This document shows positions 7,040 to 59,580 of a DNA stretch of 64,000 nucleotides, in pieces (positions within the stretch are counted from its first letter, which is position 1; the number at the start of each line of letters is the position of its first letter). A model generated the notes under the pieces. That model saw only the letters and a list, made by a program, of their open reading frames with translations, did no database searches and was not told the origin of the DNA. Position numbers and translations under genes: made by a program. Location of the stretch: positions 5,864,914 through 5,928,913 of the forward strand of contig NC_134034.1 in the NCBI RefSeq assembly GCF_964204645.1, given 5' to 3'. The DNA comes from Tubulanus polymorphus. Its lineage: Eukaryota > Animalia > Nemertea.

Positions 7040-7385
7040 ATGGGTGATCAAATATGGCTGCCATTGGGGTGACCATCTTGAATTTCTTGTTAGCACAATG
7101 CAGCCCCCAATTCTTGGTGGATTTACGTAAAATTTGGCGTGAGGATCAGGGTAGGTAAGTTATCCATGCCTATTGTATATGGAGGTCATCGGCTTTTAAA
7201 CATGGCTGCCAGTTCAGCCATCTTTAATTTCTAGCACGAAATGGCCTGCAATTATTGATACATTTTCATGATACAAGGTGTAAGAATTTTGGTAGGTGAG
7301 ATGTCTACCCCTAATTGAAAATTGAGTTCAAGTATGGCCGCCAGGGTTGCTATCCATCTTGGATTTCGTTTCAGCACAATGCCTA
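7040..7385. repeat. Non-autonomous interspersed repeat with ATGGC(C/T)GCC / CCATCTTG cores
   Basis: Three diverged units with atggc(t/c)gcc followed by ccatctt...tt...agcac, typical of Helentron-associated/pearl-like repeats. Confidence 0.4.
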
Positions 7386-10032
7386 CACCAATTGTTCATG
7401 CATTTTTTCATGTATTGTGTGATCTTTGGGGCAGCTAAAATGGGCTTTTCTTGTCTTGTAAGGATAAATGAACAGAAAATGAACATCATCGCCACATAGC
7501 CTATACCATCTTGACTTTTTATATACTTGTTTCATCGTTACAATGTCAATCTTACTGTAAAACTTTGAATACTGGATCATTCTTCTTCTACTGCGCCATG
7601 AAGGTATAAGGCCTGTGGGCCTCTTGTTATAATGGTCCGCCAAGTTCATCATGACAGTGCAACCTTTGCAATTGTCTGGTAAGTTGTCATTTTCTGCCCT
7701 CGTGTAGACATTGCAAACAGTACCCGCTAATGGAATCACAAAGGCACCGAACTTTCATAACCCTCTTAATCTGTTCCAAACTTTCATATCCCTCTTAACC
7801 TATTTCTTGGCATTTATTGTTTCCAGGCTAAACGGCCGTCAAACTTGATCATCGCTCCATCCACTGACATCGTTTGCATAGTTGTTTGTATGGAAGGTGT
7901 CAGGGGCCTTATTGACAAGGTATCGAACTTCAGTTATCGCTTGCATCTTTATCACTGGGAAGTGAACATTGACTATTCGTTTCAGGGCTTTGCGCACGTA
8001 AGATATTCATATATGCCATTCATAGTAATAGGCTTTTAAAAAAGCCTTCCCTTGGTTTGCAAGAATGATACGATACGATAGCACAGCTAACACCCGCATA
8101 ATTGGGACACCATCCTAAAAAGAGTCTCCGCCTTAAACCAGACAGACCATGCTTTCGTAAAGACAGAGAAAACAATTTTTTCTACGTTCTTAAATTTTAT
8201 TTTTGAGAAAATACAACCAACCGACCACCCACTGAAGATGTATGCGCTTCTAACATGTGTCACTTAATTACCCGGTAGTTGCTTTGCGGTTATTGATCTA
8301 CTCACTATTGCTAGCTTTGTGAAAACCTGCCTTGACGCATTGCCCAGGTTTAGTTTTCAATGAAACTGGTTACATTACAAGCGGCTGCTGGGCATGATGA
8401 GGCTACTGGTATAAATCTTCTAAATCATGAAAAGGCCTATTAAGAGATCATTATGAATTATAATCATTTTAATGGTCACTGTGTAGGGGCACTGAATCAA
8501 TGAGGTGATACAATTTAAACGCTATCATGGAAGAGTTTGTAATGAGTTCAAGAAAATTGATTGAATGTAATGAGCTGGTACCTGGGTATGACTACCTGTT
8601 CACATCTTCTATATCTGTTGGCTTCTTATGAACTTTCGCTTTTGCGAAGTCCATTTTGTTATCGCATATGAAACTTTCTTCCTTTGGTACAAAATAACTT
8701 CCAATTGAGGCTTAGTTTCTCTTCGGAACTTTTAAAACATTCAATACAGTAAGAAAAGCTCTACTATTGAATTTCATCGGAATCCGTTGCTTATTTATTG
8801 ATTTAGTTATTTATTAGTTGTTGGAACTATATTTCGTTTCGGAAGAACACATGCCCTTTTACGTATATTCATGTTTTACACATGTGCGCGGTACAGACTC
8901 GCTGCTATGTGATTTATTGATCTGCGCATGTATATGAAAAGTGCGCTTCGCGCGTGGACTATTTAAAGTTGTCCTGGGACGGCAAATGATTCAACTGCCA
9001 GGGTTGGTCGCGGACAGCCGCGAAAAGCAAAGGATTTTATAGATGGGCAGTAGAATTGAGAAAGGGGAAGTGAAGTGTCTTGGAAATCGTTCAATATACG
9101 AAAGTAAATTGTCTAACAAACTTCGTACACGGAGTATGAAATAAATGGAATCGTCACACCATGAATGTGAAGTTGTCTATTAGTCAGCGGGAAAAACCCA
9201 CTACCATGTATATTCGTGGTGAATAGTCATTCAGTTGTGTGTGATGGAGATCGTATCAGTAGACAGATTTTGATGAAATCTTCTTCATTCAATCAGGGGG
9301 GGGGGGCATCTTGGGCTTTTTGATTACTTGGAGCACGGATTCTCTGAAATTCGGCCAATTGAACTTCATGCCGAAAATAGATATGTTTCCATTCATAATT
9401 TGAAAAAAAGACATTTTTTTTCTTGATATTTTCTGTCCTTATTTTCGATCTAATTGTCTGTATAAAGGGTTCTCCCATCATTTGAATCTAATCCATTTTC
9501 ACTCTTTTTCTTTTGTTCTGCTTTATAGAGTTCCAATGTTAAATTTTGATGCTGATTAAACATAACTCATGTAAATTTAGGAAAGTCCATACTAAGAATT
9601 TCGTTTTTTGTTCTGTACTGCATTCATGCCTGTGGGATGTGGAGTCAGTAACGTGACTAATGCTAGTGACAAACTGTGATAAGGTATATTTCATTTCAAA
9701 CAACTATCTGGACAAACACATTTACTGTTTCATTAGGGAAGGTACTTTATTAGATCGGTTTGTGGAGGTGGTAATTCAACATGGCCTGGAACTTTTTACA
9801 GTCATTGAATTATCGAAAGATCCGATAAATGGGGTTAAATCCGCTGCAAAAATAGATCCGGCAATTTGTATTCAAGATTATTTCAGATTATATTGGGTTT
9901 ATATTGGGTTTGAGGGTCCTCCCCCAAGAAAATTTGGAAAATTTGAAGCATTTTCCGAGTATCTGGAACAGTTTTTATTTGTAAGGAATAAATGAAAAAT
10001 AACCAGAATATAAACATGACCAATGGATTTAT

Positions 10033-22500: not shown

Positions 22501-25500
22501 TGCCGGTTTGCTACAAATATGAAAATATATATATAAGTAATCAATTCAATTTATGCAAAGAAAACTAACCCACAGCAAATCTAAAAATTCGTTACTTACA
22601 ATTACTGTAGCTCCTCGAGCAAGTTTCTACGAAAATGACCAATGCTCAACTGTGAGATATTCAATATATACTGTATATATAATGTACTAGACTTAGTAAC
22701 AACAAAGCATGGAGAGGTTCAATGAAGGGTTACAAATCCTACAGTACTAAAGCTAAACTCGACTACAATAAAATTCTATAGCAGCAAACCGGACTTCAAT
22801 TTACAACACAGCACCTCCTAAACATCCGTATCAGACGGTGTTTGAAAATATAACGATATCATATTACAAAGATTACATGATTACTTCAAATACATATTAT
22901 TGTCGTATCAAATATAAGTAATTATCTCGCACATACAAATACAAATTTAATCAAGATAATTATACAATACTCTCTTCCAATACGCAAAGCTTAACTACTG
23001 GTCGAACATATTCTGACGAAGAGGTTTTTACTTTTACCGAACGAATTCGTCCATCATTAGGACTAGGATAAACTTCAATAATACGACCCAATGGCCATTG
23101 ACCACGAGGAATGTCTTTGTCTTTGATTAACACTAAGTCACCTAATTTGACATTTTCTGTATTTTCTAGCCACTTGCTTCTCATGGTTAAGGGTGGCAAA
23201 TACTCTTTCAGCCAGCGACGCCAAAAGTGGTCTGCCAGAACCTGGGACTGACGCCATCTTTTTCTACTGTTGATTTCACGCTCATGAAATACTCCAAGGG
23301 CCACGACAGAACTAGCACCCCCGTGTAAAAAGTGGTTTGGTGTAATGGGTGTAAAATCTGCAGGATCCACGCTATTATAAGTTAAAGGTCGACTATTAAC
23401 AGATGCTTCCACCTCTATAAGCGTTGTTCGCAGCACGTTTTCAGGAAATGATTGTCCTTTAAGGACTGATTTGATAGCCGCCTTTACCGTTCGAACCAAT
23501 CTCTCCCAAACCCCACCAAAATGGGGGGCACAGGGACTATTAAAGGTCCATTTAATACCCTTTTCATGACAAAAATTAGAAATACGAGATTGATTTAATT
23601 GTGTTAAACATTCTCTTAACTCTCTCTCAGCTCCAACAAAGTTGGAACCATTGTCACTATAAATATGACTCGGCTGACCACGTCGCCCAATGAAATTCCT
23701 CAGAATTAGTAAAAATGTGTCAGTTTCCATTGAGTCAGCTACTTCCAAATGTACTGCACGAGTTACTAAACACGTGAATAAGCAAACCCATACTTTGATT
23801 GTAGAACGCCCTCTTTTGATGAATAAAGGGCCAAAATAGTCTACCCCACTAAATTGAAAGGGTCTGCAATGACTAGTAATTCTATGTGCGGGTAAATCCG
23901 ACATAAAAGGAACTCTAGGCTTAGCTAATCGACGACGACAACTGAAGCACCGCGAAATCGCACGCTTTGCGACAGATCTAGCTTTAATTGGCCAGTACTT
24001 TTGACGAACTAATGAAATCAAGTGCTCTGGACCAGCATGGAAATGAATAAGGTGTTCTTTTCGTACAAGAAGCTCCGTGATATGATGAGAGAAAGGGAGA
24101 AGCAACTGATGGCGCGCCTCTACGGAAACATTTGGAGCATTGTGAATCCTTCCACCTACTCTGATACAGGAGCCATCAAAAACTGGATCAAGACAGCGCA
24201 AAGAACTATGATCCTTTAACTTCCCCTTTTTAAGGAAAGAGAACTCCTCTGGGAATGAGTCACGTTGGGCTTGAGAAACTAAGCATGTTTCCGCAAAATC
24301 AAAATCTTCCACTGTCAAAGTTTTTGCTTTTACAGCTGTATATCCCAAACGTGGAACGTGTAATTCCTGATAGCCCTTAAAATCCAAGCTGTTCTGCGTA
24401 ACAAAGGGTTCCAACGAGAATAATCCTCCGGCTGTACAAGACCCGTTAAGTCAATGACTGGCTCAGCCTGAGGAAATGCTAAGACTTTATTCACTAGCTT
24501 AGTTTTCTTGAGATTTTCATCTATATCTGAAATGATACCTAGATCAGGCTGAGACGGCCATTGCTTTTCAGGAACACGGAGAAATTCTGGACCTGCAAAC
24601 CAACGATGCGAAAAAGTCAGATCAGAAGCTAAAAGCCCCCTTGAGCAATCGTCAGCAGGATTCGACTCGGATGCAATATACATCCACTGATTAACCGATG
24701 ATATTTCACGAATTTCCCCCACTCTATTGGCTACAAAAATCTTGAATCTTTTTTTTTCATTACGAATATATCGTAAAACAGTTTGTGAGTCAGTCCAATA
24801 AGAGACTTCAATGTCACAAATTTCTGACAGTTCTCGCTTCAAAACCTCACCCAAACGAACCGACATAACTGCACCTTGCAGCTCCAATTTCGGCATGGTT
24901 AAAGGATGTTTTGTAGGAGCTAAGTGAGTTTTTGAAGCGAGAAAGGTAGTTTGAAATGAACTATCAATCAAATAACGCAAATATGCTACACTACCAAATG
25001 CCCTCTCGGACGCGTCACTAAACAAATGCAACTGTACATTACTAACAGAAGGAGAAAACAACTCATGGTGACGAGGAATTTTCAGCTCATGCAACAACTT
25101 CAACTCATTTTGCCATTCATCCCAGGTTACCAATAAGTCCCCAGAAATATCTTCATCCCATTCGAACCCAGACCGCCATATATCTTGAATCAAACACTTG
25201 GCCCTAAGTATGAATGGTGATAGGAAACCTAATGGATCAAAAATGGATGAGACAGCGCTTATGATACCTCGTTTAGTAAGTTTAACATCTTTGATAACAG
25301 GTTTAAATACAAAGGAATCATTCTGAGCGTTCCATTTCACACCTAAAGTCCGTTCTACTGATAAGTCACCTAAGTCTAGGTCTAACGAAGGGTTAGCAAG
25401 TTCTTCAGGGTGAATTTGGGATAGGACCCATTTACTTGATGACATCCACTTTGTGAGATGGAAACCTCCTTTAGCAAGAATATCTTTTACCTCATAAGCT

Positions 25501-28500
25501 AATTGCAACGCTTTGCTATCACCAGGAAAATCATCCACATAGAAATTTCGCAAGAATTTACAGCGATGCTACTAAAACAATCAATGTTATCACGAGCTGA
25601 TCTTTTTAGAGCGTAATTCGCACAACAAGGCGAGTCTCGAGCACCGAAAATGTGCACCAACATCTTAAAAACCTCTGGAGAACCATATGAGCCATCTGGC
25701 CGCCAAAGGAATCTCAATGATTCAGATTCGCTTTCAGAGGTTCTCACTTGATGAAACATCGCTTGTATGTCCGCAACAAGCGCTGTTTCAAATAAACGAA
25801 ATCTTTGTAAGACACCAAACAAACTATTTAACAGATCAGGGCCTGTCATTAGTAAGTTGTTTAACGAAGAACCCCTGAACTGCGAAGCTGCATCAAACAC
25901 TACCCGAACAAGCCGGGTAAATTTTTTCGAGTTTCGGTGCTCGAGACTCGCAATGGTGAGGAAGATACCAAGTTCTAGGTGTCGAAATAATTTCTTCCTC
26001 AGGAGTCAACTTTCGAGCATACCAGGCGGAAATATAGCCATTAAGTGTATCACAATAGCCATTTTTAATTACAGAATCTTTACACAGGCGGTTTGTTAGC
26101 AAGTCAAATCTTCTCTTAGCTAATGGAAAGTTATTTGGTAAAACACTATTTTCATCTCTCCATAGCATACCTACTTGATAATGATCACCCACAAGTTGGG
26201 TTGTTTCTTCAAGAATTTTAAGAGCTCTTTGATCTTCAACCGATCCAATCTTATCAGGGTAAGTTACACCAAAGGATTCTGTTGACCAAAAGTTCTCAAT
26301 TTGTCGTGAGAGTGAATTTTCATCAACAAGAGAGCATTCCGAAACAATTGAATGGACGTGAACATCGCACAAGTCATTTGACATGTTCCCAAACAAACAC
26401 CACCCTAATCTAGTCCGAATAGCTAAGGGCTGATTTGATGTCCCTTCCCTTACCTCTAATTGTATATGTGCCCTAGGTACATTTGCACCCAAAAGTACTT
26501 TAACCTGACGTGGGAATGTATCAGGAAATCGCAGACCCTCTAAATGTTTCAACTTATGAGGAGAAAATTCATTATATTTCTGAAGTGGACAACTGATATT
26601 ACCAGATGTAGTCCATGCTTGGGACACATGAATGATTTCTGACAAAGGATCATTGCTTCGAACGGTAAAGGAAACACGGCGAGATAACTGTGCATCTCTT
26701 GAGTGAAGTGTGTTGATAGTCAATACTTGTTTTTTACCAGACAACCCTAAATCAATAGCCAGATCTTCACGGATTAATGTCACGTCACTCCCAGAATCCA
26801 GCAGACCATACGTCGATATACGTCTTCCGTTAGCACCCTGAACCACAATCGGCAAAACCTGAAAATACACGTCAGAACAATTACTATCGAGACCAAGAAC
26901 TATATTGCGTTCTATTGCGCTAGGTGCTACACCTTGACTACTACTGGCTTGCGATTCACTATTACAAGTGTCTAGATTCTGAGTTTGATTCCTTTGTTCA
27001 ATATCATTAATTTTGATTTTACGTTTAACATGAAGCAGTGTATGATGTCTCTTGCCACACCCTGGTTCTTTACAGCAAGAAAGAGATTTGCAAGTCGCAA
27101 TGAAATGACCAGGTGACAAACAATTAATACACAAACGTAATCTCTTGACTAGAGCAAATCTTTCATCTACCGATTTATCAATGAAATCTCCACAATTACT
27201 CACAGAATGACTACCTGAACAAATAACACATTCAAATATTTTCCCACCTGACACGCAACTGCTAGACATCTGTTTCGTGGAATTATTCACATTGATTTTC
27301 CGTGATCCTAAAGCATTACTAGAAAAATTATTACGTTTCAATTTCAACCTATTTTGTTGTAATGAAAATGGACCGAAGTCAGCGTCAACACAATCTTTGA
27401 GCCAACTTTCTAGATCAAACAATGTAGGATCTCGTTGTCGAGATATACGTCTAACGAATTCGTTCCATTTTGAACGCTTGTCAATCGGGATACGTTTTAC
27501 AACTTTCTGTAATAAATCACTACTGCCAATTTCAGAAAGATAATTCATTTGTTTTAGAGTAATTAAGCAATCTCTCACACTAATGTAAAAGGAACGTAAT
27601 GATATTGAATCATATGAATTTGTGGGTGGACCGTTCGTAATTGATTCAATATAAGCCTAGCTACGTGTACTCTGTGTCCAAACACAAACTTTAGCTCCTT
27701 AAGGGAGCGTGCATAATTACAACCACTAAACCCAAGACCTTGAATGAGCTCTCTGGCCTCACCTTTCACATGCGACTGCAGAAGGTCTTGACGTCTGGAA
27801 TCTTTGATCCCGGGACGATTATGTACTTGCACATAAAACTGCTCAATGAACCTTGGCCATACAAGTGGTGAACCGTCGAACATCGGGAGACCAACTTTCG
27901 GTAAATCTCTATCAATCTCCATCTTGATAACGGCTTCTTCCAGGGAGGTTGAAGTGAGGTTGATGATTCCACATTTACTATAGTTTCGACTCCTTCGACC
28001 AAATCATCGATCCACGCATCAATGGTCCTAAGCGACGAGTTGTTTACAGCATTCGTCACGACATTCTCTGAAAGATCCTCTGCAACTGGATGCGACACGG
28101 AAGATGTAGACGACGCTTGGAAAATGGGTGCATTCGGATCAAGAGACGAGTCTCTTTTAGCAAAATTGTCTAACCTTTCTAAAGCAACCATAGCTTTATC
28201 GAAATAACACTCCATCCAACGCCCAGCGGTTTCGATTTCTTCTTCATTCTCGAGTACAGACATGAACTTGTCGTGAGCAGTTTGCAGATTTTGCAAACAT
28301 CCAGTGATACGTTGCTTTGCCGGTTCAACAGCCGCCGATATGCGAACTGAATCCGCAGCATCAATAGCACGAGTAAGCCAACCAGCGAGACTTGTACGAG
28401 TGGCTTTCAACGACTTACTTTTACTAGTATTTGAATCTTCGTTATCGGTCATGATGAGCTTTCGAGTAATTCAAACTATAATGTTCTAAATCGACGAAAC

Positions 28501-31500
28501 GAATCCTCGAAAATCTATTGAACACGAAAGCACAGCTACATTTCAAACTCAGCGTGTTTATTTTAGCAACTAACGATGCTGCACTATGCCATATAATGCC
28601 GGTTTGCTACAAATATGAAAATATATATATAAGTAATCAATTCAATTTATGCAAAGAAAACTAACCCACAGCAAATCTAAAAATTCGTTACTTACAATTA
28701 CTGTAGCTCCTCGAGCAAGTTTCTACGAAAATGACCAATGCTCAACTGTGAGATATTCAATATATACTGTATATATAATGTACTAGACTTAGTAACAACA
28801 AAGCATGGAGAGGTTCAATGAAGGGTTACAAATCCTACAGTACTAAAGCTAAACTCGACTACAATAAAATTCTATAGCAGCAAACCGGACTTCAATTTAC
28901 AACACATACTGTCGCATTCCATCTGACTGTGCCCTGATTCTAGAAATTTCTGATTTATTGTCTGAAGTTGTGGATTTTCTCTGAGTGCCAACAGTTAAGA
29001 GCAGGCTACGAATTGGTTCCAGTTTGGACCACCACATGTGTCAGAGTAGTACGTGATTATATCAACCATTCTGTTTGATTGGCATACTGAAGCTGTATTA
29101 CGAAGTAAACATCACAGGGGCTTGTAAACTGGCTTGGATTTTACTTCCGGGTTGTTGATAATCTCGCGAGAATGGCGCTAAATTTAAACTGCAAATAAAT
29201 TCAAAATATCACAGAAATACCTCGTGTTGATGTTGTTTATTTATCCACTATAGAGTTTTGATAAACAATTGGCTGTTAAGGATCAGTATCAGCGGGCGCG
29301 ACACCTTACTATATTAAAATAACAAGGGATGAAACGGCTTCGCTTTTGCCTGTGACCGTATTGATGCGGCGGAAACCACTGCGCATGCGCGGCAACTTTC
29401 CGAAAGGTTAAGATCAGTTCAAGTTCAATTGATTCTTCTCAAAAACCTATGTCAAGCCAAGGCAATCACACTTCTAAGGAAATTATCAATTTTTGAATTG
29501 ATGTAGAAAAACTATAATGTGTAGTTTGATTGACAGCTCACAAGCGCTCGGAAGTTGCTGCGCATGCGCAGTGGTTTCCGCCGCATCAATACGGTCACAG
29601 GCAAAAGCGAAGCCGTTTCATCCCTTGTTATTTTAATATAGTAAGGTGTCGCGCCCGCTGATACTGATCCTTAACAGCCAATTGTTTATCAAAACTCTAT
29701 AGTGGATAAATAAACAACATCAACACGAGGTATTTCTGTGATATTTTGAATTTATTTGCAGTTTAAATTTAGCGCCATTCTCGCGAGATTATCAACAACC
29801 CGGAAGTAAAATCCAAGCCAGTTTACAAGCCCCTGTGTAAACATGTGGCGATTTCATTTGAACCCCTTTTGCCTTGGGTTTCATCCCATAAATGACATAT
29901 GCCTTGGCCATCTCCAAGAGAATTAACACTCAAGTTATATACACAGTTTTCTCGAGTTGTATAGTTCGCCCACCTTAGAACAGGGTGTAGTCAGTACTGC
30001 TCCTAAATCAAAAGTCGCTGTGTATTCCTGTGTATTCTTCAATATGGCCTTCATCTTATCTTTCTCTTTTTCCAAGCGTGCTTCGATTTTCCTCTCTTGA
30101 TGACTGATAAACTTTTTCTCTGTGGCATCATCCAGGCTTCCTGCTTCAGATTTCATTTCATAAAGATGACAAGTGCTGCATTTGTCCCCCTTGGGCTTAA
30201 AGAAAGAAATGTTGAACTCCTCACAGAAAATCTTCCTGTATTTTGACTCTGTAACGTACGTCTCGCTATTCTTTTTGCAGTACTCAACATATAATTTCCA
30301 CATTCTGCTTATGTTGAGGTCACCGGAGATATACACTTTCTTAGTATCTTTCCTGGTATAGTGCGACTCGACCTTGGGGAACATTTCTATGTGTTTTCTT
30401 ACATTATCGATCATCTTTTCACTAATCTTATTGTGGGGAGGCGTCCTTTTATTTTGGTTTGGGACAACAATCTCATGCTGTTTTCTTTTCATTGCTGTTT
30501 CCACTGGCTTGCTGGAAATATCTATTGTATCAAGGAAAAACTTTTTGCAAACCCTATGACGGGTACTACCATTCATGAGATTATATTGGTTGTAAGCTTT
30601 TCTTTTTCCTTTAGAACGAGCTGGTGTTACACTGTCGACCATTGAAGCAATAAAATCCAGTTGCCTGTCATTCGATCCCAAACTGTAAAAGCAGTCAAAA
30701 ATCTCTCGCCTTACCTCATCAGGAATCTGATTATTGCAATTAAATCGACATTTACTACAGTCAGTATTTTTCACAGATTTCTTTTCAACAATTTTGTTTG
30801 TTCGCGAGATGTATTCTTGACCTGACACTTTCAGTCTCTTATTGACATTTCTTCTCCACAGTTCTGGGTCAGCTTTAGTTTTCCTTGCTCGTTTTGTCTT
30901 TTTTGGAGACTGGTACTTAGCTCTTTTATATGGCGTTAGAATCCTGCATTAGTTGCCAGTTGCAGGTCTTGTTCATCATTCTGAAGCGGGTTACCTCCCT
31001 CTTGTGTCACAGTTAGATTATGTATCAACGTCCCCTCCCCTTCATCCATCTGAGCATCAGTCACTAACGAAGGTTTTTGGCCCTCAGTTAGATTATTTAT
31101 CATCGTTCCGTCCTCTTGATCCATTTCGGTATTAGTGACCGGTGATTCTTCTTGCCTCTCAGCTTCATTATTTATCGCTGTACCATCCTCTTGGTCCATT
31201 TGCTCGATTATAGTTTGTTGATTGTTTGAAGGTTCTGTTTGTTTACTCTGGTCTAGCCTGGTTTGTTTTTCATTAATAAAATTTTGATGTTTATATCTTA
31301 TTATACATGTCTGATATATGATGGATTGGTAAGATGTTGGACTTTTTACTGATATAATGCCATAATAATGTTCTTCGCCAGGAACAGCAAGATAAGCTAA
31401 TGGAACTACAGGTATTTCTTTTTCAGTTTTCTGCATATTTGATGGGCATACCTCACATACAGGAGAGAGTACGCTGCTGGAGAATATTTGAATTCTACAA

Positions 31501-33475
31501 TTGAATATATTTGCCACAGCCAATGGGATACAATCTGTGATCTCATTATTCCATATTCCATTTTGTCTGATATTGTGAATATCCTTAACAAGTCCTAGCA
31601 TCTGCCTTTTCTCTGAACCGGTTCTGAATCCAAGATATTTCTTTTTGTTACTAGAAATATGATCACACACATCATTCCTGAACAGATCAATATTGAACTG
31701 ATCGGCCTCATCGCAGGTCTTTAGAAATGATTTAAAGAAACAGTTACCATCGGGATAACTTTCAATTTGTTTCATATCGTTGCTAATTAATAGATTATCC
31801 AATCGTTTTAAGTGATATTTTTTCATCATTTGATTGATTTTCGATTCTTTCTTTGACAGGTCTTTAGCCTTTTTCAGTCGAATGTTGACATCAGTCTCTT
31901 CCAGGACAATGCTGCAATCTGAGTCTGAAATCTCGCTTGGCTGATGATAATCTTCATCATTATTATCATCATCACCATTTGATGATTCATTTTCATATGG
32001 ACGCTTATCCACTCTGATTATCCACTACTCTATTATCCGCTTATCCACTACTCCATTCTGATTCTCAAAACAGAAAATATAATTGGGGTTACATATTTGG
32101 TTTTGTATTATGCAATATTAAGGTCATTAATATTCATAATCTATTTTTTGTTGAGCAAATATAATTAACTTACCATCTTGAATTAAATCTTTGCCACTGT
32201 CATCGTTTCCAGTACAGGATTCGTGATTGATAGAAATAACTGTAGATATCAAAATATCAGAGACGTTGAATTCAGAATCTGAAATTCCATTATCGGACCA
32301 TTCGATCTGTGACAGAAAGCACAAGTTTAGTTTTACATATTAAGAAAGAATCTATTTCTGTAAAAACCACTTTAGAAATCTCATTTAAAAAACCATAAAC
32401 GTATTAATGACAAATTGCCGCATGATCGGAGATTCGTCTGTAGCCTAGGGAATTGGATGGTAATATTGTGCATTGTATTAAGCTAGCCACATTAGGCGAA
32501 ATACAAGCTGTGTCTTTTTACATGGTTCAAATATGTTGCATATATGATAAATGTTAAATTTCTTCAAAGATTATTTTTAACATTAATACAGAATGCTTTG
32601 AATTAACACACAAATTTATCTTAAAATTTATTTAGTGAATCAAAATTCATGATTTTACATTAAAATATCACTAAAATTTCACTCACCTCAGCCATTATGA
32701 GTAAGGAAAATTGAACAGCATCTACTCAGCTTGCAAAATATATACTGCAAAGCCTATACATGTATATAGTTATATTGACCCCATAACAACAGGATTAAGC
32801 AATGAATCTCCTGATACACAAGATGTTAAGTGATAAGAAATTTAGTTATAGCTACACATAAGTTGTATGCACAATAGAGATAAGTGACACTTATAACTCT
32901 GTTGCATAAAACCACATGCACTTAAACCAGTTGTGCAGTAAACAAATGTTTAAAAATCACTTAATCCATTTGTACATAATTAATTTACTAATTAATCAAT
33001 TATTAGATTGGGAATAAAATTTCTCAAAAGAAGCAGGACATACATAGGAAGCTTGTGATACCAATTACTCAATTTGACCAAAAAAATGCACTTATCACCG
33101 TGTCGCACCAAACCCTCGATTTGTTCTTTTTGAGACCTTTGCGCTAACGATTTTATCTCCACTCAATAAATGCAATACTGGATCTAACCCTTCACGAAAC
33201 CATCCAATTGACACCAAATGTAAAAAATGTTTTTTTTTAGAATAATTGATGGATTATATCGAACTTAACATTTATATGGAAAATTAAGGACATTTTTAAT
33301 ATAAACATAGCCAGTTGCTCTCGAATAGTCGAATTACGTAGAATGGAACTTCTTTTAGGTCAAGACTTGTTGAAGTAAGTTTACATTGTTTTCTTGTGTG
33401 AATGTTTCAGCAAAATGTTTTGTCTTTTCAGATTCAAGACAGGTTGTTGTTACCATACAAGGACAGACTCAATGA
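19573..33475 (+). CDS. yjbQ: UPF0047 / YjbQ family protein, spliced host gene (5' exons not securely located)
   Basis: Exons 19573-19607, 19743-19762, 19857-19896, 20223-20264, 20953-21070 and 33432-33475 all have AG/GT borders and consistent phases. They give KHTSASLCLNESYDPDVRTDMEMMLDRLAPENAPYQHTAEGADDMPAHVKNALLGSSVTIPIKNGQLVTGTWQSLWFCEHRRSKHSRQVVVTIQGQTQ*, containing the HTSASL..NE, EG.DDMPAH.K and GTWQ....E motifs of YjbQ. Confidence 0.93.
21886..22383 (-). pseudogene. Sola1 transposase, C-terminal part
   Basis: MHSAIEK..PSQW...KLPISSAKKKDL..LC...IVPEEYH.YF..L; rejoins ECDS at 28910 once the BEL element is removed. Confidence 0.85.
22386..22808 (-). repeat. 3' LTR of the BEL/Pao element
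   Basis: No differences found by eye against 28482-28904. Confidence 0.95.
22960..28452 (-). pseudogene. BEL/Pao gag-pol polyprotein split over six frames
   Basis: ORFs 27766-28452, 27575-27922, 25893-27578, 25499-25900, 24330-25553 and 22960-24414. Confidence 0.93.
28482..28904 (-). repeat. 5' LTR of the BEL/Pao element
   Basis: Gag ATG at 28452 lies 30 bp downstream on the minus strand. Confidence 0.95.
29113..29837. mobile_element. Foldback MITE with ~285-bp TIRs and 7-bp TSD (P/Galileo-like)
   Basis: CACAGGGGCTTGTAAACTGG...CCAGTTTACAAGCCCCTGTG; TAAACAT flanks both ends; removal restores the Sola1 codons EIATCLLR. Confidence 0.9.
29935..30828 (-). pseudogene. Sola1 transposase, N-terminal/central part
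   Basis: 297-aa ORF; continues with stops at 29838-29934, 28910-29112 and 21886-22383. Confidence 0.85.
30936..32012 (-). CDS. OTU-family cysteine protease (deubiquitinase-like) domain ORF inside the Sola1 element
   Basis: PDGNCFF catalytic Cys motif, R..VCDHI helix, G.W....DCIPLAVAN.F.C.I.I, and LAY.....EEHY catalytic His motif; acidic low-complexity flanks. Confidence 0.8.
   Translation of the reverse strand: MDKRPYENESSNGDDDNNDEDYHQPSEISDSDCSIVLEETDVNIRLKKAKDLSKKESKINQMMKKYHLKRLDNLLISNDMKQIESYPDGNCFFKSFLKTCDEADQFNIDLFRNDVCDHISSNKKKYLGFRTGSEKRQMLGLVKDIHNIRQNGIWNNEITDCIPLAVANIFNCRIQIFSSSVLSPVCEVCPSNMQKTEKEIPVVPLAYLAVPGEEHYYGIISVKSPTSYQSIIYQTCIIRYKHQNFINEKQTRLDQSKQTEPSNNQQTIIEQMDQEDGTAINNEAERQEESPVTNTEMDQEDGTMINNLTEGQKPSLVTDAQMDEGEGTLIHNLTVTQEGGNPLQNDEQDLQLATNAGF
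33432..33475 (+). CDS. yjbQ: Terminal coding exon of the YjbQ-family gene
   Basis: ttttcag|AT TCA AGA CAG GTT GTT GTT ACC ATA CAA GGA CAG ACT CAA TGA; joins the phase-1 C of exon 20953-21070. Confidence 0.88.
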
Positions 33476-50845: not shown

Positions 50846-52770
50846 TTAAATTGCATAAACTCTGCTGTCGTTGTCATCATTCCGAGTCGTCAAGTGAACG
50901 CGGAAGTAAAATACCTTTCCACAGAAGCAATGGCTTTGTGATTTTTTGATTTTCGTTGATTGTTTCTTTTTTTCAATGGGTTTTCTGGTTTTATTAGCCA
51001 CCACACATTGCAGTGTTTTTCGCATATGTGCTAAAAATAAGGAGAAATAACTAAGGGGCCGTCCATAAAAGACATCCACGCTATAGGATGGAGGGGGGTT
51101 TGATTTTTTGGCCTTTTGTAGACAAGGTGATATGGATTTTATGTGGACATAGGGGCAGGGGGGGTCAAATTTTCCATATTTTGTGTGGACGTCTTTTATG
51201 GACAGCCCCTAACTAGGGGTCCAGGGACACCATGCCAACTTGAGAAGCAACTGGTGATATCCATATGATAAAAGCATAGCGTACCTATGAAACTAAATAA
51301 AATATATAATTCAATCTATGTTAAGTGACATATTCTTCAGTTATCATTCATTACCTTCTGGTTTAAGTTTTTTCGCTCGGAGTGCTATTGGCGAATTGAT
51401 AGCAAGTGCATCGAAACCTGTAAATATAAGATAAATACTAATGATAAATATGTATATAAATAACAGATGCGTAGTAATTAGAGAATTTTCATCTCTTTCT
51501 ACAAAACTATGCATCATTAGAGTACGGGTATGAGAACTTTCTTACCTAGATCCTGGGCATCATGTAAATCGGTAAAAATTCTGTCATCCACATTCTCGAC
51601 TGAAGTTTTTACTGTGTTGTTTTCTTCTTTGCTTTCGTCCAAATTCTCGACTGTAGTTATTACTGTGTTGTTGTTTTCTTTGCTTTCGTCCAAATTCTCG
51701 ACTGTAGTTATTACTGTGTTGTTGTTTTCTTTGCTTTCGTCCAAATTCTCGACTGTAGTTATTACTGTGTTGTTGTTTTCTTTGCTTTCGTCCAAATTCT
51801 CGACTGTAGTTATTACTGTGTTGTTGTTTTCTTTGCTTTCGTCCAAATTCTCGACTGTAGTTATTACTGTGTTGTTGTTTTCTTTGCTTTCGTCCAAATT
51901 CTCGACTGTAGTTATTACTGTGTTGTTTTCTTCATCTGCTGATATCTTATGACCAGTTGATTCTACAACATGAATGTACTTCATAATACATGTACTCAAA
52001 GATTTTTACTTTCCAAAAAGAAAGAAAAATAGAGGGAATATAAGAATTTACCAGCAATTCTTTTAAATAGGTCTTCAGGAACATTGTCTTTTGGTATAGT
52101 TGTTGCAGAAAGGGTTCTTCTATTAAATCTGGTTGTTCCTGTTGTTCCACCCATCAATTTTGCATCTTTGCGAAGCTGTGCCTGGGTGAAGCGAACATGA
52201 CTCTGACGATCCTTCATTATTTTGTAAAATTCCGTAATACGCACAGCTATTCCTGTATCCATTTGTTTTCCTCCAAAATGGCACGAAACCACTTTAATCA
52301 TAGAACTTATCTAGTAGTAAAGTACACGCCAAAATTAGCAAAAAAATACCAAAATACTACCAAAAACATATCAAAAATTTGTGTATATATGCATACCTTA
52401 TCTCTTGCCAGAGTGCCAAGCGCAATTTCTAAAACTTCCAAGAAGATGGAGTCATGGCACCTATCTTTCTTCAGCTGATGAGCAAAAACTCCTGATTTCA
52501 AGACTACATTCTCAAAATGTGCCATAATTTCCTCATCTGTTGCATTAAGTCCAATTGTATCTCTGAACTGCAAAAAGTCACAACTTATACATAACTGATT
52601 TTTTTAAAATGAATGATATCATCTTACATTTAATTCGATGAAATAATATTTCAATCATAGAATATGTTTTACTCACTTTCTTGGCATACGTCAATAGCAT
52701 TGCATAATCCTGATCACCATCCACGAGTGTACAAGCTTTCAGCTGAATTTGACCTTGACCCTTGACAGTG
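50846..52770 (-). CDS. Spliced gene of unknown function (5'-truncated), with a coding minisatellite and a C-terminal Zn-finger-like motif
   Basis: Exons ~52770-52677, 52567-52397, 52310-52052, 51962-51546, 51417-51355 and 51030-50846; five GT-AG introns with consistent phases (0,0,1,1,1) and no internal stop. Confidence 0.7.
51055..51209. mobile_element. 155-bp PIF/Harbinger-type MITE
   Basis: TIR GGGGCCGTCCATAAAAGAC.TCCAC / GTGGACGTCTTTTATGGACAGCCCC; TAA TSD. Confidence 0.85.
51580..51933 (-). repeat. 51-bp coding minisatellite, (ENNNTVITTVENLDESK)x6 plus one degenerate copy
   Basis: Near-identical in-frame units inside exon 51962-51546. Confidence 0.95.
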
Positions 52771-53836
52771 GCGTACGTGCGCGTCCTTAGTTACCGTGCG
52801 TGAACTTGCTGATTATATTTTTGCGCTGCGCTGTGTGTCATAATATGAATTTTCAATCATTGTTCTAAATCTTTAACAGATATTCATTCAGGAAATCTGT
52901 TTTTGTGGTTTTTAGATTGATAAAATCATATTTCATTATAAAAATACGCAGTGGTCCTCCTGGTGGTGATTTTCCTAAAATGGCCGCCGTCGGCGATGTT
53001 TTCAATAATTTTTGACGTCAAATTCAAAGATTTCACAGGATAACACTGGATTATGTGCATACGATATCATATTTGATATTGGCAACAGATGAAGGAAGAT
53101 AACGATGGCTTAATTGGTGTAAATGCGTACGATAGATGCTGTATTTGCCTCTGAAATGCAATATTTCTGTTCTATTTCCGGGTTCTCGAGTCGACTGACC
53201 AGCTGACAGTAAGTACTGCTGATACGTGTGTAGGCTTTTAGTTGACTTTGTAGCTTACCAAAACCACCTGAACCATTTCTTTACGCAAAATGATAAATAG
53301 GTATGGTAGATTCTCTTTGTATAATGGCAGATAATTCGACATTCAATAGTAAAATGATACTCGAAAGACCTCCTGTCCTGGAGGACTGGACCTGGTGTAG
53401 TAGCCGTAGGTCACCGCAGCTCCACAATACTAAAAAGTTCATGCTGATACTTTGAAATGAAAAGGCCTAATGCACCGAAGCTGTTTCGGCAGAATATGTG
53501 ACATGAATTTTTATCCGAATATAGGTCTATTGCAGACTGTACCAGGACTGAACTCAGATTGGCTATGCCGTAAAGACTTTCCAGTCGAAAATAAGTGGAC
53601 CAGAATTTCATGTTTTAAGAAAAGGATGGAATTCACCAACAGGAAAGATGATTTGGCTGATAATGTGGCTGTGGCCACAGTTATATCTCGGTAAGTCAAT
53701 ATCTCATAGGCCTACGAACAGACGTAAGCACGAAATTCTGATTTTTTAACCTCCCTGCCCCATGTACGAAGTAATAACTGGTAAGCAGATTATATCTTAA
53801 TTGTTTACTTTATTCGTATAGGACTATAGGCTACGG

Positions 53837-54260
53837 CTGACAGTAGAGCGAGCGGGAGGGAATAAACCCGAACATAACTCTATGGTTTAAAAACCATAAA
53901 GTTGCCCATTTCCCATCCACTTCTCTACTGTCAGACAAACAGATATATAGACAGACATAGACAGACATAGATAGACAGAATACATTAATAGTTAATAGAC
54001 TGACAGTAGAGCGAGCGGGAGGGAATAAACCCGAACATAACTCTATGGTTTAAAAACCATAAAGTTGCCCATTTCCCATCCACTTCTCTACTGTCAGACA
54101 AACAGATAGATAGACAGACAGACAGACATAGATAGACAGAATACATTAATAGTTAATAGACTGACAGTAGAGCGAGCGGGAGGGAATAAACCCGAACATA
54201 ACTCTATGGTTTAAAAACCATAAAGTTGCCCATTTCCCATCCACTTCTCTACTGTCAGAC
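53837..54260 (+). repeat. Head-to-tail array (~2.6 x 162 bp) of a hairpin plus (GACA)n Helitron/Helentron-like unit
   Basis: Units start at 53837, 54000 and 54161; each has CTGACAGTAGAG...CTCTACTGTCAG inverted ends, a central TATGGTTTAAAAACCATA palindrome and a (GACA/GATA)n tract. Confidence 0.85.
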
Positions 54261-54342
54261 ATCACGGTGAAAATATTACTATCACTCCGAAAATGCACAT
54301 AACAAAGTATAGGGCCTAGATGTTTGGTACTTGATTGAAAAT

Positions 54343-57036
54343 TTAGCTCTTACTACATTTTTGACATTTTCGTTCATTTTGTTTAGTTATAAAAAATCCA
54401 CCGCACAGACATTTGCGTGGAACAGTTTCGATACTTAGCGTTTTCGTAGTATATAGACCCTGATTAATGAAGATTAACTTGGTTCGTAGAATATTGTCCC
54501 TTATAGTGCAATAAACTCGTCCATCTTTATTGACACTAGCATGTTTAGATTCCAGTCCTTGTTCGCCAAACATGCCAATTGTCCTCCAGACACGAACAAA
54601 TTCTGGTACATGATAAATTAGCATGTGCATTTTCGGAGTGATGTTTGTGTCCGGAAACGCGTTCGGATACCACATACCGAAATCATCACAAAGCCTACCT
54701 AGTTCTTCAACTTCAGAATTTTCAAGGAAACGGTTTGCCGTATATAATGTATAGATTGAGTGAAATTTCTCAAACAAAAGTTGGAATAATGACTGAGTAG
54801 CTGGGTCAAATTCTAGTGCTTCACATAATTTACGCGGATTATTGATTCCTTTTGATTCATCGATTTTGAACATTTTATGGATATGATTGCCGACAAAACT
54901 ATTCGAATGGTAGGCCTGTCGATCAATACCAATCTCAGATAGGATATTGTTGAGTTTTTTTTGGGTCGGTCCTTGAATACTATTAATTTCTTTGAAAATT
55001 TCATTCAGAAGAGATTGTTCCGGGGCTATTTGTGTTTTCAAAGTTGAGATGTCTTTTTTTAGCTTTGTGATGATGATGTTTTGTTTTTTTATGATAGAAT
55101 CTGCTGATGGTTTGCGACCAGTAAAACATTCTATACACCTAAATTCATCAGGATTCGATACGCATTGTTTATGAAAGGGTAAGTTGCAATCTACGCAGTA
55201 TGTATATTCATTTGGGTTTGCATTTTCAATAGAGCGAATGAAGCAGATGGATGCCGTGCAGTCAATTACCGATGAACCTTTACGGTGGGAAATTTTCATG
55301 AGATTAAGTAATTGGCTGGATGATTCAAAAGACAATTGTTTCGATTCGATTTCTAGTCTTAATTTTGAAACTACTTCTGATTGGTCTTGCCATTTTTTGT
55401 TTAATTCAGGGTTCGATTCCCTTAAGTTTGTCTGGTCGTGTTCTTTGCACTTGTTTTCCATCATCTCAAAGAAACAGTGGCCTAATCCTAGGGAAATATG
55501 GAGAACTGGAGGAACGAGATGAAGCATGTCTGATGGTTTGAATAGCATTGATGATGAAATACTCAAGGTTTCTGGGCCGAATGATTGTGGTGATTTTGAT
55601 GAATTTTCGAGATATGATGCGATAGTACGGTTTTGATATGGATGGGAAGATGGATTGTGTGGTGTTCTGTTCTTTTTCCTAAGATCTTCAAGTTTTACTT
55701 GGCACCATAAACAGGGATAGGTAGCCGAGGGCCCCTGGTGACCCATGCAGTTACACAGATATGCATAATCCCCAATGAGGAACATCCTAACAGGCAAATC
55801 TAATTTTCTATTATCAATCATTGTTGATATAGTGATATCATTAGCATCGATTTCATCTTTGAAAATCCCGAATACCGTTCTCATATTCTCAACAATATCA
55901 GTGCCTTCAAAATAGCCAATCATTTCGCTGGCATCTGCACTGTTGTTCCCTTCCCCATTTATAACCGAGTATATCATTTTTGTACTACCCCCTCCCTTGT
56001 CAATACCCACTTTGACCCAAACTTCATTGTGAAAATTTGGATGAAAACTCATTTTCTTTCGGTCAGATAGATTTTGTACAGTTCTTTGAATTTGTAACTT
56101 CAAATTAGTCAGAGTTGCATGAGGAGCTGTCTTTTTTTCATGGGTTCTCGAATTAACTTCTAATTCTGTTTGGCCTACAGTGATATAGGGGGTGAAAGAT
56201 TTTCCCCTCTGCAAGATCTCTTGTCGGATTTTGTTTGCAGATGGAAAGATTGGCGTTCCATAGCTTTTTAGAACCCGTTTCAAGTCGAAAAGTCGTCTCA
56301 TCGGCAGACGCAGAGCAAGTTTTAATTCAACAGATTGCGATGCGGTTAATGGTTTGAGTAGATGTAATTGTTGAGAATGGTCTATTGCAGATTTAGATAA
56401 TTTGGGATTGTGTGATAGAAATGTTGAAAGCGTGATGCTGCTCTGATATGAATTGATTGGTTTAGCTGATATTGTGTCTAATACATTTTTCATTGTCAAT
56501 GCTCGAGCTTCTAGAGTTTGGGAACTTGCCGCTGATGATGGGACATTAGGGATGCTCAATTTGCAAAACTTTTCAGGGCGAGACTTCGTTAAGTGACGAG
56601 CATCGAAGATGCTATTCATATTTCCTCCGCATATTTCTAATAAGCTTTTATTTCTGATTAGAGATTCATATTGTTCGTATTGCAATATCTGATTTTGTAA
56701 CTCTTCTAATTTCTGATCTTTAATTTTGATTTGCTCTGCTAAATTTACATTTTCTGATTGCAAAACCAATTCCTCACTTTCTATCCGTCTCATTTTCGAC
56801 TCAAGTAGTTTGATCTTAATTTCTTGTTTATTTTCAGTTGCGGTGTTCTCCGTTTGACAGCTGCGATCCTCTTTGAAATGATAGGTCGGTACAGATGTTT
56901 CAACGTTGGTACTTGGTACATACATAACAGGGGACGTAAATGGAGTACTGGTAAATGGAGGCTGAATATTTGATTCTTTTTCGTCAAATGAAGTTTGCGA
57001 TTGAGGAGAAAACTGGCTAGACACACTTTCACTCAA
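54343..57036 (-). CDS. Intact Chapaev/Transib/RAG1-like DDE transposase with an inserted PHD finger
   Basis: 897 uninterrupted codons: KVGIDKGGG (D1), IGDY (D2), YPCLWC (ZnC2), PPVLHISLG, RQAYH..FVGNH, TPKMHMLIYH (ZnH2), GEQGLESKH (E); C4-H-C3 insert CTASIC..CVDC....H..C..CIEC; CACGGTG terminus at 54263, 80 bp past the stop. Confidence 0.85.
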   Translation of the reverse strand: MSESVSSQFSPQSQTSFDEKESNIQPPFTSTPFTSPVMYVPSTNVETSVPTYHFKEDRSCQTENTATENKQEIKIKLLESKMRRIESEELVLQSENVNLAEQIKIKDQKLEELQNQILQYEQYESLIRNKSLLEICGGNMNSIFDARHLTKSRPEKFCKLSIPNVPSSAASSQTLEARALTMKNVLDTISAKPINSYQSSITLSTFLSHNPKLSKSAIDHSQQLHLLKPLTASQSVELKLALRLPMRRLFDLKRVLKSYGTPIFPSANKIRQEILQRGKSFTPYITVGQTELEVNSRTHEKKTAPHATLTNLKLQIQRTVQNLSDRKKMSFHPNFHNEVWVKVGIDKGGGSTKMIYSVINGEGNNSADASEMIGYFEGTDIVENMRTVFGIFKDEIDANDITISTMIDNRKLDLPVRMFLIGDYAYLCNCMGHQGPSATYPCLWCQVKLEDLRKKNRTPHNPSSHPYQNRTIASYLENSSKSPQSFGPETLSISSSMLFKPSDMLHLVPPVLHISLGLGHCFFEMMENKCKEHDQTNLRESNPELNKKWQDQSEVVSKLRLEIESKQLSFESSSQLLNLMKISHRKGSSVIDCTASICFIRSIENANPNEYTYCVDCNLPFHKQCVSNPDEFRCIECFTGRKPSADSIIKKQNIIITKLKKDISTLKTQIAPEQSLLNEIFKEINSIQGPTQKKLNNILSEIGIDRQAYHSNSFVGNHIHKMFKIDESKGINNPRKLCEALEFDPATQSLFQLLFEKFHSIYTLYTANRFLENSEVEELGRLCDDFGMWYPNAFPDTNITPKMHMLIYHVPEFVRVWRTIGMFGEQGLESKHASVNKDGRVYCTIRDNILRTKLIFINQGLYTTKTLSIETVPRKCLCGGFFITKQNERKCQKCSKS

Positions 57037-58977
57037 TAGGCTCGTATTTCCCCATTTTGCATTTCCTATTGAATCAATAGATGGTAAAATACAATCAATT
57101 TCAATGAATTAATTTTCATGCATACGAGTCCCTTCATTTATAAACCAATGTCGATCATTATCAGTTGAAATAAAAGATCAATGGAAGTGTACATATGGTA
57201 CTAATTAATTTAGTTTTGTTGTTTTCTCATTAATCCATATATTCATAAATAGGAAGTATTAGTCACCAGTTAGTAAATATAATTCAACTTACCTAACCAT
57301 TTTTATCATAATTTCTTTCCATTTCAAATATAAGACCCACAATAACATTATACGTAGAACATTGTGTCTTTACACTTGCTAGGGTTCATTTGAGTTCTTA
57401 AGTTTGTAGTTAACAACAATCCAGAATAAATGCCAATGGAATAGTGGTGAGAGTTCTACCCTTTTTTTATTGTGGGTTGTTGTCACTCATAAACCCTCAA
57501 ATTCTCAGTCTCACTCACTGGCAGTCATCATAATATAATTACTTCACCTCCTTTTTCTGAACAATTCTTAAATATGAACATGTGCATTGTATACATTGTA
57601 AACCTGAGGCCTGTTTTCCAAGAATACATACGAGACTCGTATTAATGTTTCAATACTGATATTGGCTTAGGGGGGAATGGGTTAATAGGCACAACAGGAG
57701 TAGACTATACACGAAACACATTTATTTGAGAATTGCCATTTAAGATCTTCATGATCCCTAGATACTTTGATTCAGAGCATGTTTAGAAATCAGTTCCTTT
57801 TTGAAAAATAAATCAGAACTTAAAAAGTCAGAAAATATAATTATTGTTTTTATTCAATCAGAAAATAAACTTAATTTAAATAACAAATTCCAAAGTTTAT
57901 TTTTCACTCTCATTTGAATGCAGCTATAGATTATATTTTTAACAAATATACTTACAAATCAAAAATCGAAAATGTATACCTTATTCATGAATAACTAACT
58001 TGCCAGCAAAATGCAATGGGAACAGCCGAGGCATAGGCATGATTCATAGTTGGCATTTTGGGAGTGAAGAATGAAACTACTGGGACATAAAAAGAATTGT
58101 ATTGATATACGTACTTGCTTCGATCATTTTTTTTACTTTAGCTTTATTTTTCTTACTTTTCTGGTTGGACCCATAATAAAGCTTACGTTTGCCTTGACCA
58201 ACTTTCCTGTCAAAATTTTCTGCCATTCTGAAATTGAAATCATGCCAATTCAAGTAACAAAGTAACCGCTTATTTGTAAGCATGAGATGGTTTTTCAACT
58301 TAGCATACGAAATTAAATTGTTGGTTTACCTCACCTGACTAAATTAAAAATATGGCTAGACTGCAGTCTAAACGATATCAATATCAACACTTGCGGTTGG
58401 ACTCTTGACACTGCGAATCTGAAATTATAAACAAAAAACTACAGCTTAATCAAGGAATTTTTAACTTTTTGGTATAGACTGACACTGCGACTGCGAAAAA
58501 TCTGAAATTATAAACAAAAGTACAGCTTAATCAAGGAATTTTTAGCCCGAGGAGAACTTTTTAGTATGAAATACATTTTTCGGCCTACCTCACTAGACGA
58601 TATTGAAGGGCCCCACCCGACGGCAGCCTGCCACTGAAGGACCACGAAAAATCTGAAATTATTGAAGTTACATGCATGATTGATCAATTTTTTTATTTCA
58701 AAGTCCAAGAAAAAGTTTTCGATTTGAAAAATGACTGATTTTTGAGCCTACCTCACGAGACGATATCTTATTTTATGAGTACAGTAGGAATTTAAACGAC
58801 GAAAAATATCCTGAAAGAGAAAAGTGGATATTCGAACAGAAAGTCTAAAAGGGGACTACTATTTGATTTGGCTTTGCTTTTGGACATGAATCAGGCCTCT
58901 CTACTATTGAACATACGATTCAATATGAATTATCTCTCATGGATATCACTAAATTCGGTGTTCAAATGAGGCAAGGC

Positions 58978-59580
58978 CTATAAAGATAAAGATACTGCGA
59001 ATTTGAATGATGATCGAAATCGACTAAAACTTATTTCCGGGTTAGGAGCGACACGATTTCTCAGCGATACGGCGATTCTATCTAACTATCATTTTAAAGC
59101 AATAGAAGATGGACATTATGTACTGGTATATTTTCAACTACTCACCCGTACACAACATGAAACGATCTAAAATACTTTTGGATGGATAACTGCCAGTATC
59201 TGCGTAGTTCCATCGGCGTCATTTGAACCAATACCCCTGCTATTTCGTTGTTGCTCTCAACCAAGGCTCTCTCAAGGGTATGTGGGTGATACGCATCCCT
59301 TTCCTGAATAAACACTTTCCTAAAACATATATGAAAAACTAAATGAAAGATCATGTCCCGATAAATCCGATGAAAATCTGCAAAAATTTGCTTACACTTC
59401 ACGGTCTGGTTCATATGGAGAACAGAAATTCAAAATCATGCCGGAACCATCACTAGACGTTATGAGGCGAACGATTTCGAGAGAAAAATTAAATCCTTCT
59501 AGCCACTGTGTTCTACGTTTTTTTTCTGTATAATTTTCACGTACTCTGAATGCATCGCCAAATTCATTATTGCCAGCCAT
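58978..59580 (-). CDS. Candidate spliced orphan gene (~150 aa)
   Basis: ATG exon 59580-59396 (GTAAGC donor), exon 59319-59146 (GTGAGT donor), tentative exon 59077-58978; phases consistent; no recognisable domain. Confidence 0.45.

Follow-up and report, generated by a model that had tools for sequence, protein, structure and literature searches.

The longest open reading frame (ORF) in a 64,000-nt stretch of the genome of the nemertean Tubulanus polymorphus (assembly GCF_964204645.1, contig NC_134034.1, positions 5,864,914 to 5,928,913; hereafter the window, whose own numbering is used below) is, with a high degree of confidence, the transposase gene of a young, low-copy and autonomous DNA transposon of the Chapaev family. 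This ORF lies on the minus strand (54343-57036) and comprises 897 codons plus a TAA stop, the second-longest ORF of the window encoding 561 aa. Chapaev is classed in the CMC group or, following Kapitonov and Koonin, in a 'Transib superfamily'; the family is said to go back to Kapitonov and Jurka in 2007, and CMC-Chapaev to Yuan and Wessler in 2011. The protein combines a RAG1-type catalytic core with a PHD-type zinc finger carried inside that core, and the evidence for its family, its mobility and the possible role of the finger is considered in turn.

The RAG1-type core and the assignment to Chapaev

The ORF encodes the catalytic motifs GIDKGG (D346), IGDY (D423) and EQGLES (E825), the zinc-ligand motifs PCLWC (C442/C445) and KMHMLIYH (H804-x4-H809) and, besides these, PPVLH (L512-H513) and RQAYH. 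There is also an internal cluster of the form C593-x4-C598-x15-C614-x2-C617-x4-H622-x2-C625-x8-C634-x2-C637, and a C-terminal one, C876-x-C878...C891-x2-C894 (CxC-x12-CxxC). Because all these residues are invariant in five paralogous subfamilies of the same genome, whose mutual identity is just 41-48%, they are conserved features rather than chance occurrences. A word-based protein search for relatives found none; an exhaustive profile search returned 4,146 at E <= 0.001, from which samples were drawn of the best 150 representatives, of 51 and of 96 near-full-length sequences. Relatives outside the T. polymorphus genome share some 20-30% identity, and most of D346, D423, E825, C442/C445, the LH motif and H804/H809 are conserved in at least 90% of the 51-96 relatives compared.

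The 96 sequences served to build an AlphaFold2 (AF2) model with a pLDDT of 86.5 and a pTM of 0.73. Foldseek comparison of this model with the PDB gave significant matches to RAG1 (E 5.6e-14), amphioxus BbRAGL (5.4e-10) and HzTransib (2.5e-07) only, the next fold being that of Hermes at E 0.1. VIA-align superposed model residues 228-872 onto RAG1 460-1007 with Z 27.8 and a root-mean-square deviation of 4.0 A over 454 residues, the nonamer-binding domain (NBD) being included in some rows; BbRAGL and HzTransib followed with Z 25.7 and Z 25.6 (414/480 residues), and the P element transposase with Z 12.7. The family profile also matches RAG1 by sequence (E 3.9e-15), in three collinear blocks. The first aligns aa ~160-260 with the RAG1 stretch 'RQHLLSLTRRAQKHRLR'; the second pairs D423 with the Asp of 'GtgyDEK' and C442/C445 with the CxxC of 'YiCtLC'; the third pairs H804/H809 with 'LHktlaH' and E825 with 'sEGnES'. 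In mouse RAG1 we take the aligned blocks to be the NBD, D708, C727/C730, H937/H942 and E962. Read from this alignment, the ligands follow the RAG1/Transib order. An earlier note, made from the letters of the window alone, had described its longest unbroken ORF as a RAG1/Transib/Chapaev-like transposase with a DDE triad, CxxC and HxxxxH ligands in that order and a C-terminal CxC..CxxC, and had proposed a structural comparison with HzTransib and RAG1; fold, profile and paralogue conservation now agree with it on each of these counts.

The family itself is indicated by a Pfam match to DUF1280 over aa 218-390 (80.1 bits, the cut-off being 25; E 2.4e-22), a domain that has been equated with Chapaev transposases and placed in the same clade as RAG1 (Majorek et al., PMC3985635). 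The hallmarks published for Chapaev, namely target-site duplications (TSDs) of 3-4 bp, CAC/GTG termini and the motifs C(2)C, LH and H(4)H (PMC4079192), are all present here as 4-bp TSDs, CAC...GTG ends, C442-x2-C445, L512-H513 and H804-x4-H809. An N-terminal Chapa domain, corresponding to the RAG1 N-terminal region, and RING fingers have been described for Chapaev as well (Kapitonov and Koonin, PMC4411706). The ORF has no Cys-rich N-terminus that could represent a Chapa zinc finger or a RING, and no homology to either was found in the 2 kb upstream, where a tblastn search of a full-length copy, using N-terminal extensions from 67 relatives as queries, revealed no Chapa or RING coding capacity. 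DUF1280 was recognised in 48 of the 51 relatives, RING in 7, the Chapa domain (RAG1_imp_bd) in 6 and Pfam PHD in 7, so that the Chapa and RING modules, found in only 6-7 of the 51, are not universal in the sampled family. Neither the nemertean host nor this specific family is described in the Chapaev literature searched.

Element ends, genomic copies and recent mobility

When the assembly to which the window belongs (T. polymorphus; 268 Mb, 77 contigs) was searched in six frames, 55 matches were returned, including three full-length intact copies at 99-100% identity and several subfamilies at 43-48% identity, each with multiple intact copies. Element limits were set by blastn comparison of copies with 10-kb flanks (three to six other copies, 99.0-99.7% identity). 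The repeated unit proved to be much larger than the ORF, spanning 52722-59072 in the window. Its low-coordinate end is a boundary shared exactly by seven copies whose flanks are unrelated, and the opposite end reads ...CGTCGTG-3' in the complete copies; with boundaries common to 6-7 copies, the ends fit 5'-CAC...GTG-3' (CACGAGTG...CGTCGTG), and the terminal inverted repeat (TIR) amounts to only ~CACGA (~5 bp). An inverted-repeat search detected no long TIR around the ORF, the ~5-bp repeat having emerged from the comparison of copies. Five of the six complete copies are flanked by perfect 4-bp TSDs, all of them different (TGTC, ATAG, ATGA, TAGG and GATA), and in the sixth the two flanks agree at three of four bases.

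In the window copy the low-coordinate end is complete. At 59072 the sequence diverges from the other copies, and ~436 bp including the high-coordinate terminus, upstream of the ORF, are missing. Since the DNA past 59072 is single-copy in the genome, this loss is a deletion rather than a nested insertion, and it is private to the window copy. Such a copy is probably still a source of transposase in trans but, with one end gone, is unlikely to be able to move itself.

The earlier note had placed the terminus elsewhere, at the heptamer-like CACGGTG beyond the stop codon. The motif is indeed there, 73 nt past the stop, but it cannot be credited with the role of an end: it lies ~1.5 kb inside the element and directly adjoins an internal tandem array, and its two occurrences in the window compare with 2.83 expected by chance. 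The genome-wide search for a partner end and TSDs that the note had suggested did recover both ends and the 4-bp duplications, the end being CACGAGTG at 52722. The copies also differ in their internal sequence. The tandem array varies greatly in length, from 2.6 units in the window to ~6-7 on C5 (L027 about 2498-3582) and ~13-14 on C2 (L026 about 6442-8669), and the C5 copy (L027) has an extra ~836 bp near the low-coordinate end (element positions about 495-1330) that is missing from the window, C2 and C12 copies and represents either a nested insertion in the former or a deletion in the others.

Seven copies at 99.0-99.7% identity, three of them with intact ORFs (those on contigs C2 and C5 included), occupy non-homologous sites in the genome. 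Two C12 copies (L006 and L007) carry an identical +1 frameshift and an identical 18-nt deletion, and yet their sites are ~104 kb from each other and differ in flanking sequence and in their TSDs, which are perfect in both; this defective derivative moved after it had been broken, and therefore a working transposase was supplied in trans. These observations indicate recent mobility, including the trans-mobilisation of a defective copy, in line with the suggestion of the earlier note that the element was recently active. The 18-nt deletion of the pair is in frame (ORF nt about 1884-1901) and removes codons of the PHD finger around NPDEFR, the frameshift lying upstream of it. As to the distribution of the family along the genome, contig C12 has a concentration of matches in its distal 5 Mb (about 6.7-11.2 Mb), where about half of the 55 are found, and many others are on C8 (about 2.4-7.6 Mb); these regions may be rich in transposons or preferred landing zones.

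A PHD-type finger on a predicted coiled-coil stalk

Between the ZnC2 and ZnH2 ligand pairs, that is, from the LH motif to RQAYH, the polypeptide carries an insertion with respect to RAG1 and Transib. In the AF2 model aa 540-688 fold into a pair of long helices that run antiparallel (543-586 and 645-687), a zinc finger lying between the two, and this segment aligns to generic helical hairpins of the PDB only, to neither RAG1 nor Transib. A cluster at the equivalent place was found in 47 of the best 150 representatives, the eight PHD ligands being invariant in these 47 sequences and the canonical W-x-H being present in many. When a profile of the module was compared with solved structures all the top 60 matches were PHD fingers, DPF3 at E 3.7e-10 and also KDM5B, KAT6A, KMT2D and BPTF; Pfam PHD was recognised on the homologous stretch of relative P0025 (30.8 bits, cut-off 24) and, just at the cut-off, of P0024. 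Modelled in isolation and zinc-free, the module adopts a two-strand sheet plus a helix with a pLDDT of 79.7. The coiled coil-C4HC3 PHD-coiled coil insert that the earlier note had read between PPVLH and RQAYH is well supported by the model helices, the invariant ligands and the module-profile match. At the opposite extreme of the protein, aa 1-71 are predicted by the AF2 model to be disordered, and the long helix that follows (aa 72-129) is probably a coiled coil which would serve dimerisation.

The same architecture is widespread among the relatives. About half of the near-full-length sequences (50 of the 96) have a long Cys-rich LH-RQAYH segment (median ~209 aa). In the other 46 the segment is short and poor in Cys (median ~131 aa), and it is mostly among these that N-terminal RING fingers fall. 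In an unrooted FastTree phylogeny of the core alone the PHD-less sequences make up approximately one strongly supported clan, the remainder being PHD-bearing with three or four isolated losses, and the PHD label requires 4 changes on the tree versus 32 when labels are shuffled. Either a single gain or a single loss of the insertion would fit this unrooted tree. The nearest protein-atlas clusters are entitled 'Zinc finger PHD-type domain-containing protein' (score 0.96), with DUF1280 in 97% of their mostly nematode members; these nematode DUF1280 proteins, sequence-distant and known from automatic annotation only, show the same combination of DUF1280 plus PHD as the window protein. The internal PHD is a clade-wide norm already visible in automatic annotation, and its occurrence in some half of the 96 closest relatives, as also in the annotated nematode proteins, weakens the novelty that the earlier note had implied for the architecture. 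Full-text literature searches retrieved no paper describing or discussing a PHD inside Chapaev transposases, the original Chapaev Repbase Reports being outside their coverage.

Features of the Chapaev-type element in the window, with the evidence for each
Feature	Position	Strand	Basis
Chapaev-type DNA transposon copy (assignment very probable), transposase on minus strand	52722..59072	-	blastn vs other copies
Element terminus 5'-CACGAGTG	52722..52729	+	exact boundary common to seven copies, flanks unrelated
Internal tandem array, period ~161-164 bp, 2.6 units	53837..54261	.	Tandem Repeats Finder; staggered blastn matches in copies L026 and L027
Internal CACGGTG	54263..54269	+	2 matches vs 2.83 expected; position relative to element ends
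Transposase ORF	54343..57036	-	897 codons + TAA
C-terminal Cys4 module, aa 876-894, two short strands	54355..54411	-	paralogue conservation; VIA alignment to BbRAGL
Core part 2, aa 705-872: ZnH2 (H804, H809), E825, C-terminal-domain (CTD)-like	54421..54924	-	profile alignment to RAG1 blocks NGNY.., LHktlaH, sEGnES; fold alignment
Insertion vs RAG1 and Transib, aa 540-688	54973..55419	-	model secondary structure
Cys4-His-Cys3 PHD-type finger, aa 593-637	55126..55260	-	invariant ligands, module profile, Pfam PHD in relative P0025, Foldseek
RAG1-type core part 1, aa 160-513: NBD-like, domain for dimerisation and DNA binding (DDBD), pre-RNase H, RNase H (D346, D423), ZnC2 (C442, C445), up to LH motif	55498..56559	-	VIA-align, profile alignment, Pfam DUF1280
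N-terminal long helix, aa 72-129	56650..56823	-	AF2 secondary structure H72-129
Non-coding 5' part of element, no ORF >80 aa	57037..59072	-	ORF scan; tblastn

Some further features of the window concern the 5' part of the gene and the surroundings of the ORF. The candidate splice donor of the earlier note near 57297 (ATGGTTAG|GTAAGT) was considered in combination with the only obvious acceptor (57066/57065; AG at 57067-57066), and this pairing was set aside since the product would be out of frame. Two of the diverged subfamilies (among L018, L019, L020 and L029) lack an ATG over the first 173-197 codons of a frame that is nevertheless open, a feature of their sequence which suggests that a spliced 5' exon may provide the start codon in these two. 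A scan for bacterial promoters and terminators, irrelevant to a eukaryote, gave hits at chance level. A perfect 20-nt inverted repeat pairs window positions 54281-54300, in the 3' untranslated region, with 54623-54642, which code for the H-x4-H motif (ITPKMH), at a distance of 322 nt. It is kept in all three intact copies of the subfamily and was not found in four diverged subfamilies; it is probably a small inverted duplication and, once transcribed, could pair as a long-range stem. Elsewhere in the window, further sizeable ORFs of 484, 407, 561, 297 and 358 aa are located at 22960-27578 and 29935-32012, both on the minus strand.

Possible roles of the finger, alternative readings and relation to known systems

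By analogy with the better known members of the group, a mechanism can be envisaged in which a dimer, joined by its N-terminal coiled coil and by the DDBD-like region, would bind the CAC termini, with end recognition aided by the NBD-like and C-terminal zinc modules. Excision would proceed by nick-and-hairpin chemistry like that of RAG and Transib, and integration with a 4-bp stagger. The PHD finger on its stalk would tether the transposase to chromatin, or license it there, via a histone tail and in cis, as the PHD of RAG2 does in trans for RAG1; judged by this parallel, chromatin tethering or licensing would be the most likely role of the module. Extended to the relatives, the proposal is that of a deep clade of RAG1-fold transposases with an in-cis chromatin reader, whose stalked PHD would bind a histone tail and so license or target cleavage and integration, which we put forward as a tentative and rather doubtful idea. 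The full-text literature searched contains no paper describing or testing in-cis histone reading by RAG1-fold transposases.

Several points weigh against our interpretation of the ORF as the gene of a working transposase with a chromatin-reading finger. The ORF as listed opens at TTG, the first in-frame ATG being codon 38, and the window copy has lost one of its ends, as described above. The window protein alone is not significant for PHD (phmmer against the PDB, E 0.2; no Pfam PHD match), and the isolated module retrieved nearly exclusively PHD fingers in Foldseek, UHRF1 first, but weakly (E 0.05-0.5, TM-score 0.35-0.47). Its first ligand pair is C-x4-C, atypical with respect to C-x2-C. Finally, the residue two before the PHD His is Pro (LPFH), as the earlier note had observed, and not the Trp of the aromatic cage, which is found in 11 of 46 relatives; because this Trp is replaced by Pro in the window subfamily, H3K4me3 is not expected as the ligand here.

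The scarcity of the cage Trp among family members and the Pro at its place, the spacing of the first pair and the fact that the best structural neighbours are UHRF1-type PHDs, not H3K4me3 readers, all speak for a different function, to which we give considerable weight though somewhat less than an even chance. The Cys4-His-Cys3 module could be a zinc knot of PHD descent which has ceased to read histones and which instead caps the coiled-coil stalk or makes protein or DNA contacts in the synaptic complex, e.g. holding protomers or target DNA. PHD-like domains devoid of histone binding are reportedly known. What such a knot accounts for less readily is that the module profile matches bona fide histone readers (DPF3, BPTF, KDM5B and KAT6A) at E 1e-8 to 4e-10, that the canonical C-x2-C-x-x-W-x-H signature is kept in many relatives and that the module as such persists throughout a deep clade, where it was lost only a few times.

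Whatever the finger does, the fold of the model is as near to RAG1 and BbRAGL as to HzTransib, and RAG-like (RAGL) transposons exist in another nemertean, Notospermus (PMC7204232), so that the element might be taken for a Transib proper or a RAGL transposon rather than a Chapaev. We regard this as very improbable. The TSD is of 4 bp, not 5 bp; neither a RAG2-like gene nor any further ORF >112 aa exists within 52722-59072; the strong DUF1280 match is the only one that the window protein has in Pfam at E <= 1, RAG1 families included; and its sequence identity to RAG1 over the fold alignment is only 11-14%. The C-terminus is instructive in this regard. The zinc-binding C-terminal tail of invertebrate RAG1L (CTT*, Cx2Cx3GHx4C) contacts the TIR beside the heptamer (PMC7204232), and the fold alignment to BbRAGL reaches model residue 895, i.e. 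across the Cys4 module of the window protein, which occupies the same position with a different motif. By analogy this module may bind the TIR as well, even if the difference in motif argues against a RAGL transposon.

Domestication, by which the ORF would now be a host gene for a co-opted RAG1-like recombinase with a built-in chromatin reader, had been offered as an alternative by the earlier note, and it might be suggested by the integrity of the ORF in a copy deprived of one transposon end and by the NCBI annotation of paralogous loci as protein-coding 'uncharacterized protein'. It is scarcely credible in the face of seven copies that are nearly identical and that bear TSDs of their own at non-homologous sites, further subfamilies each with multiple identical intact copies, the mobilisation of a defective derivative and a truncation private to the window copy.

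With these alternatives weighed, the Chapaev element appears as an ordinary, well-preserved transposon whose value is that of a specimen. In the group from which RAG1 arose, Chapaev is the branch that has been studied least, and intact near-identical copies with defined ends, TSDs and trans-mobilisation offer a practical start for a first biochemical study of a Chapaev transposase. The PHD-on-stalk insertion of a large clade provides a natural test of whether the association of RAG-type cleavage with chromatin reading recurs, and bears on the evolution of the RAG1-RAG2 pair; were the finger a histone reader in cis, the link between RAG-type cleavage and histone reading would be either ancestral to the Transib/Chapaev/RAG lineage or repeatedly evolved in it.

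Among known systems, the closest are the Chapaev transposons, which share with the window element the 4-bp TSD, the 5'-CAC...GTG-3' ends with very short TIRs, the C(2)C, LH and H(4)H motifs and DUF1280. The window subfamily departs from them in lacking the Chapa and RING modules and in having instead a coiled coil at the N-terminus and, internally, a coiled-coil-plus-PHD insertion. HzTransib of Helicoverpa zea is, like the window protein, a single-protein transposase with a RAG1-type core, whereas Transib elements have 5-bp TSDs and longer TIRs with a CACAATG-type heptamer, and their transposase has neither the NBD-like extension nor the coiled-coil/PHD insertion. The RAG1 core has the same domain order and fold as the window protein from NBD to CTD, the termini begin with CAC like the heptamer of the recombination signal sequence, and in both cases the enzyme has a PHD finger associated with it. 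The RAG system differs in its 5-bp TSD, nonamer, 12/23 spacing and RAG2 partner, none of which is seen in the window element, and in carrying its PHD on that separate subunit, where it reads H3K4me3 through a Trp-containing cage, while the window protein bears the finger in cis, on a stalk and without that Trp.

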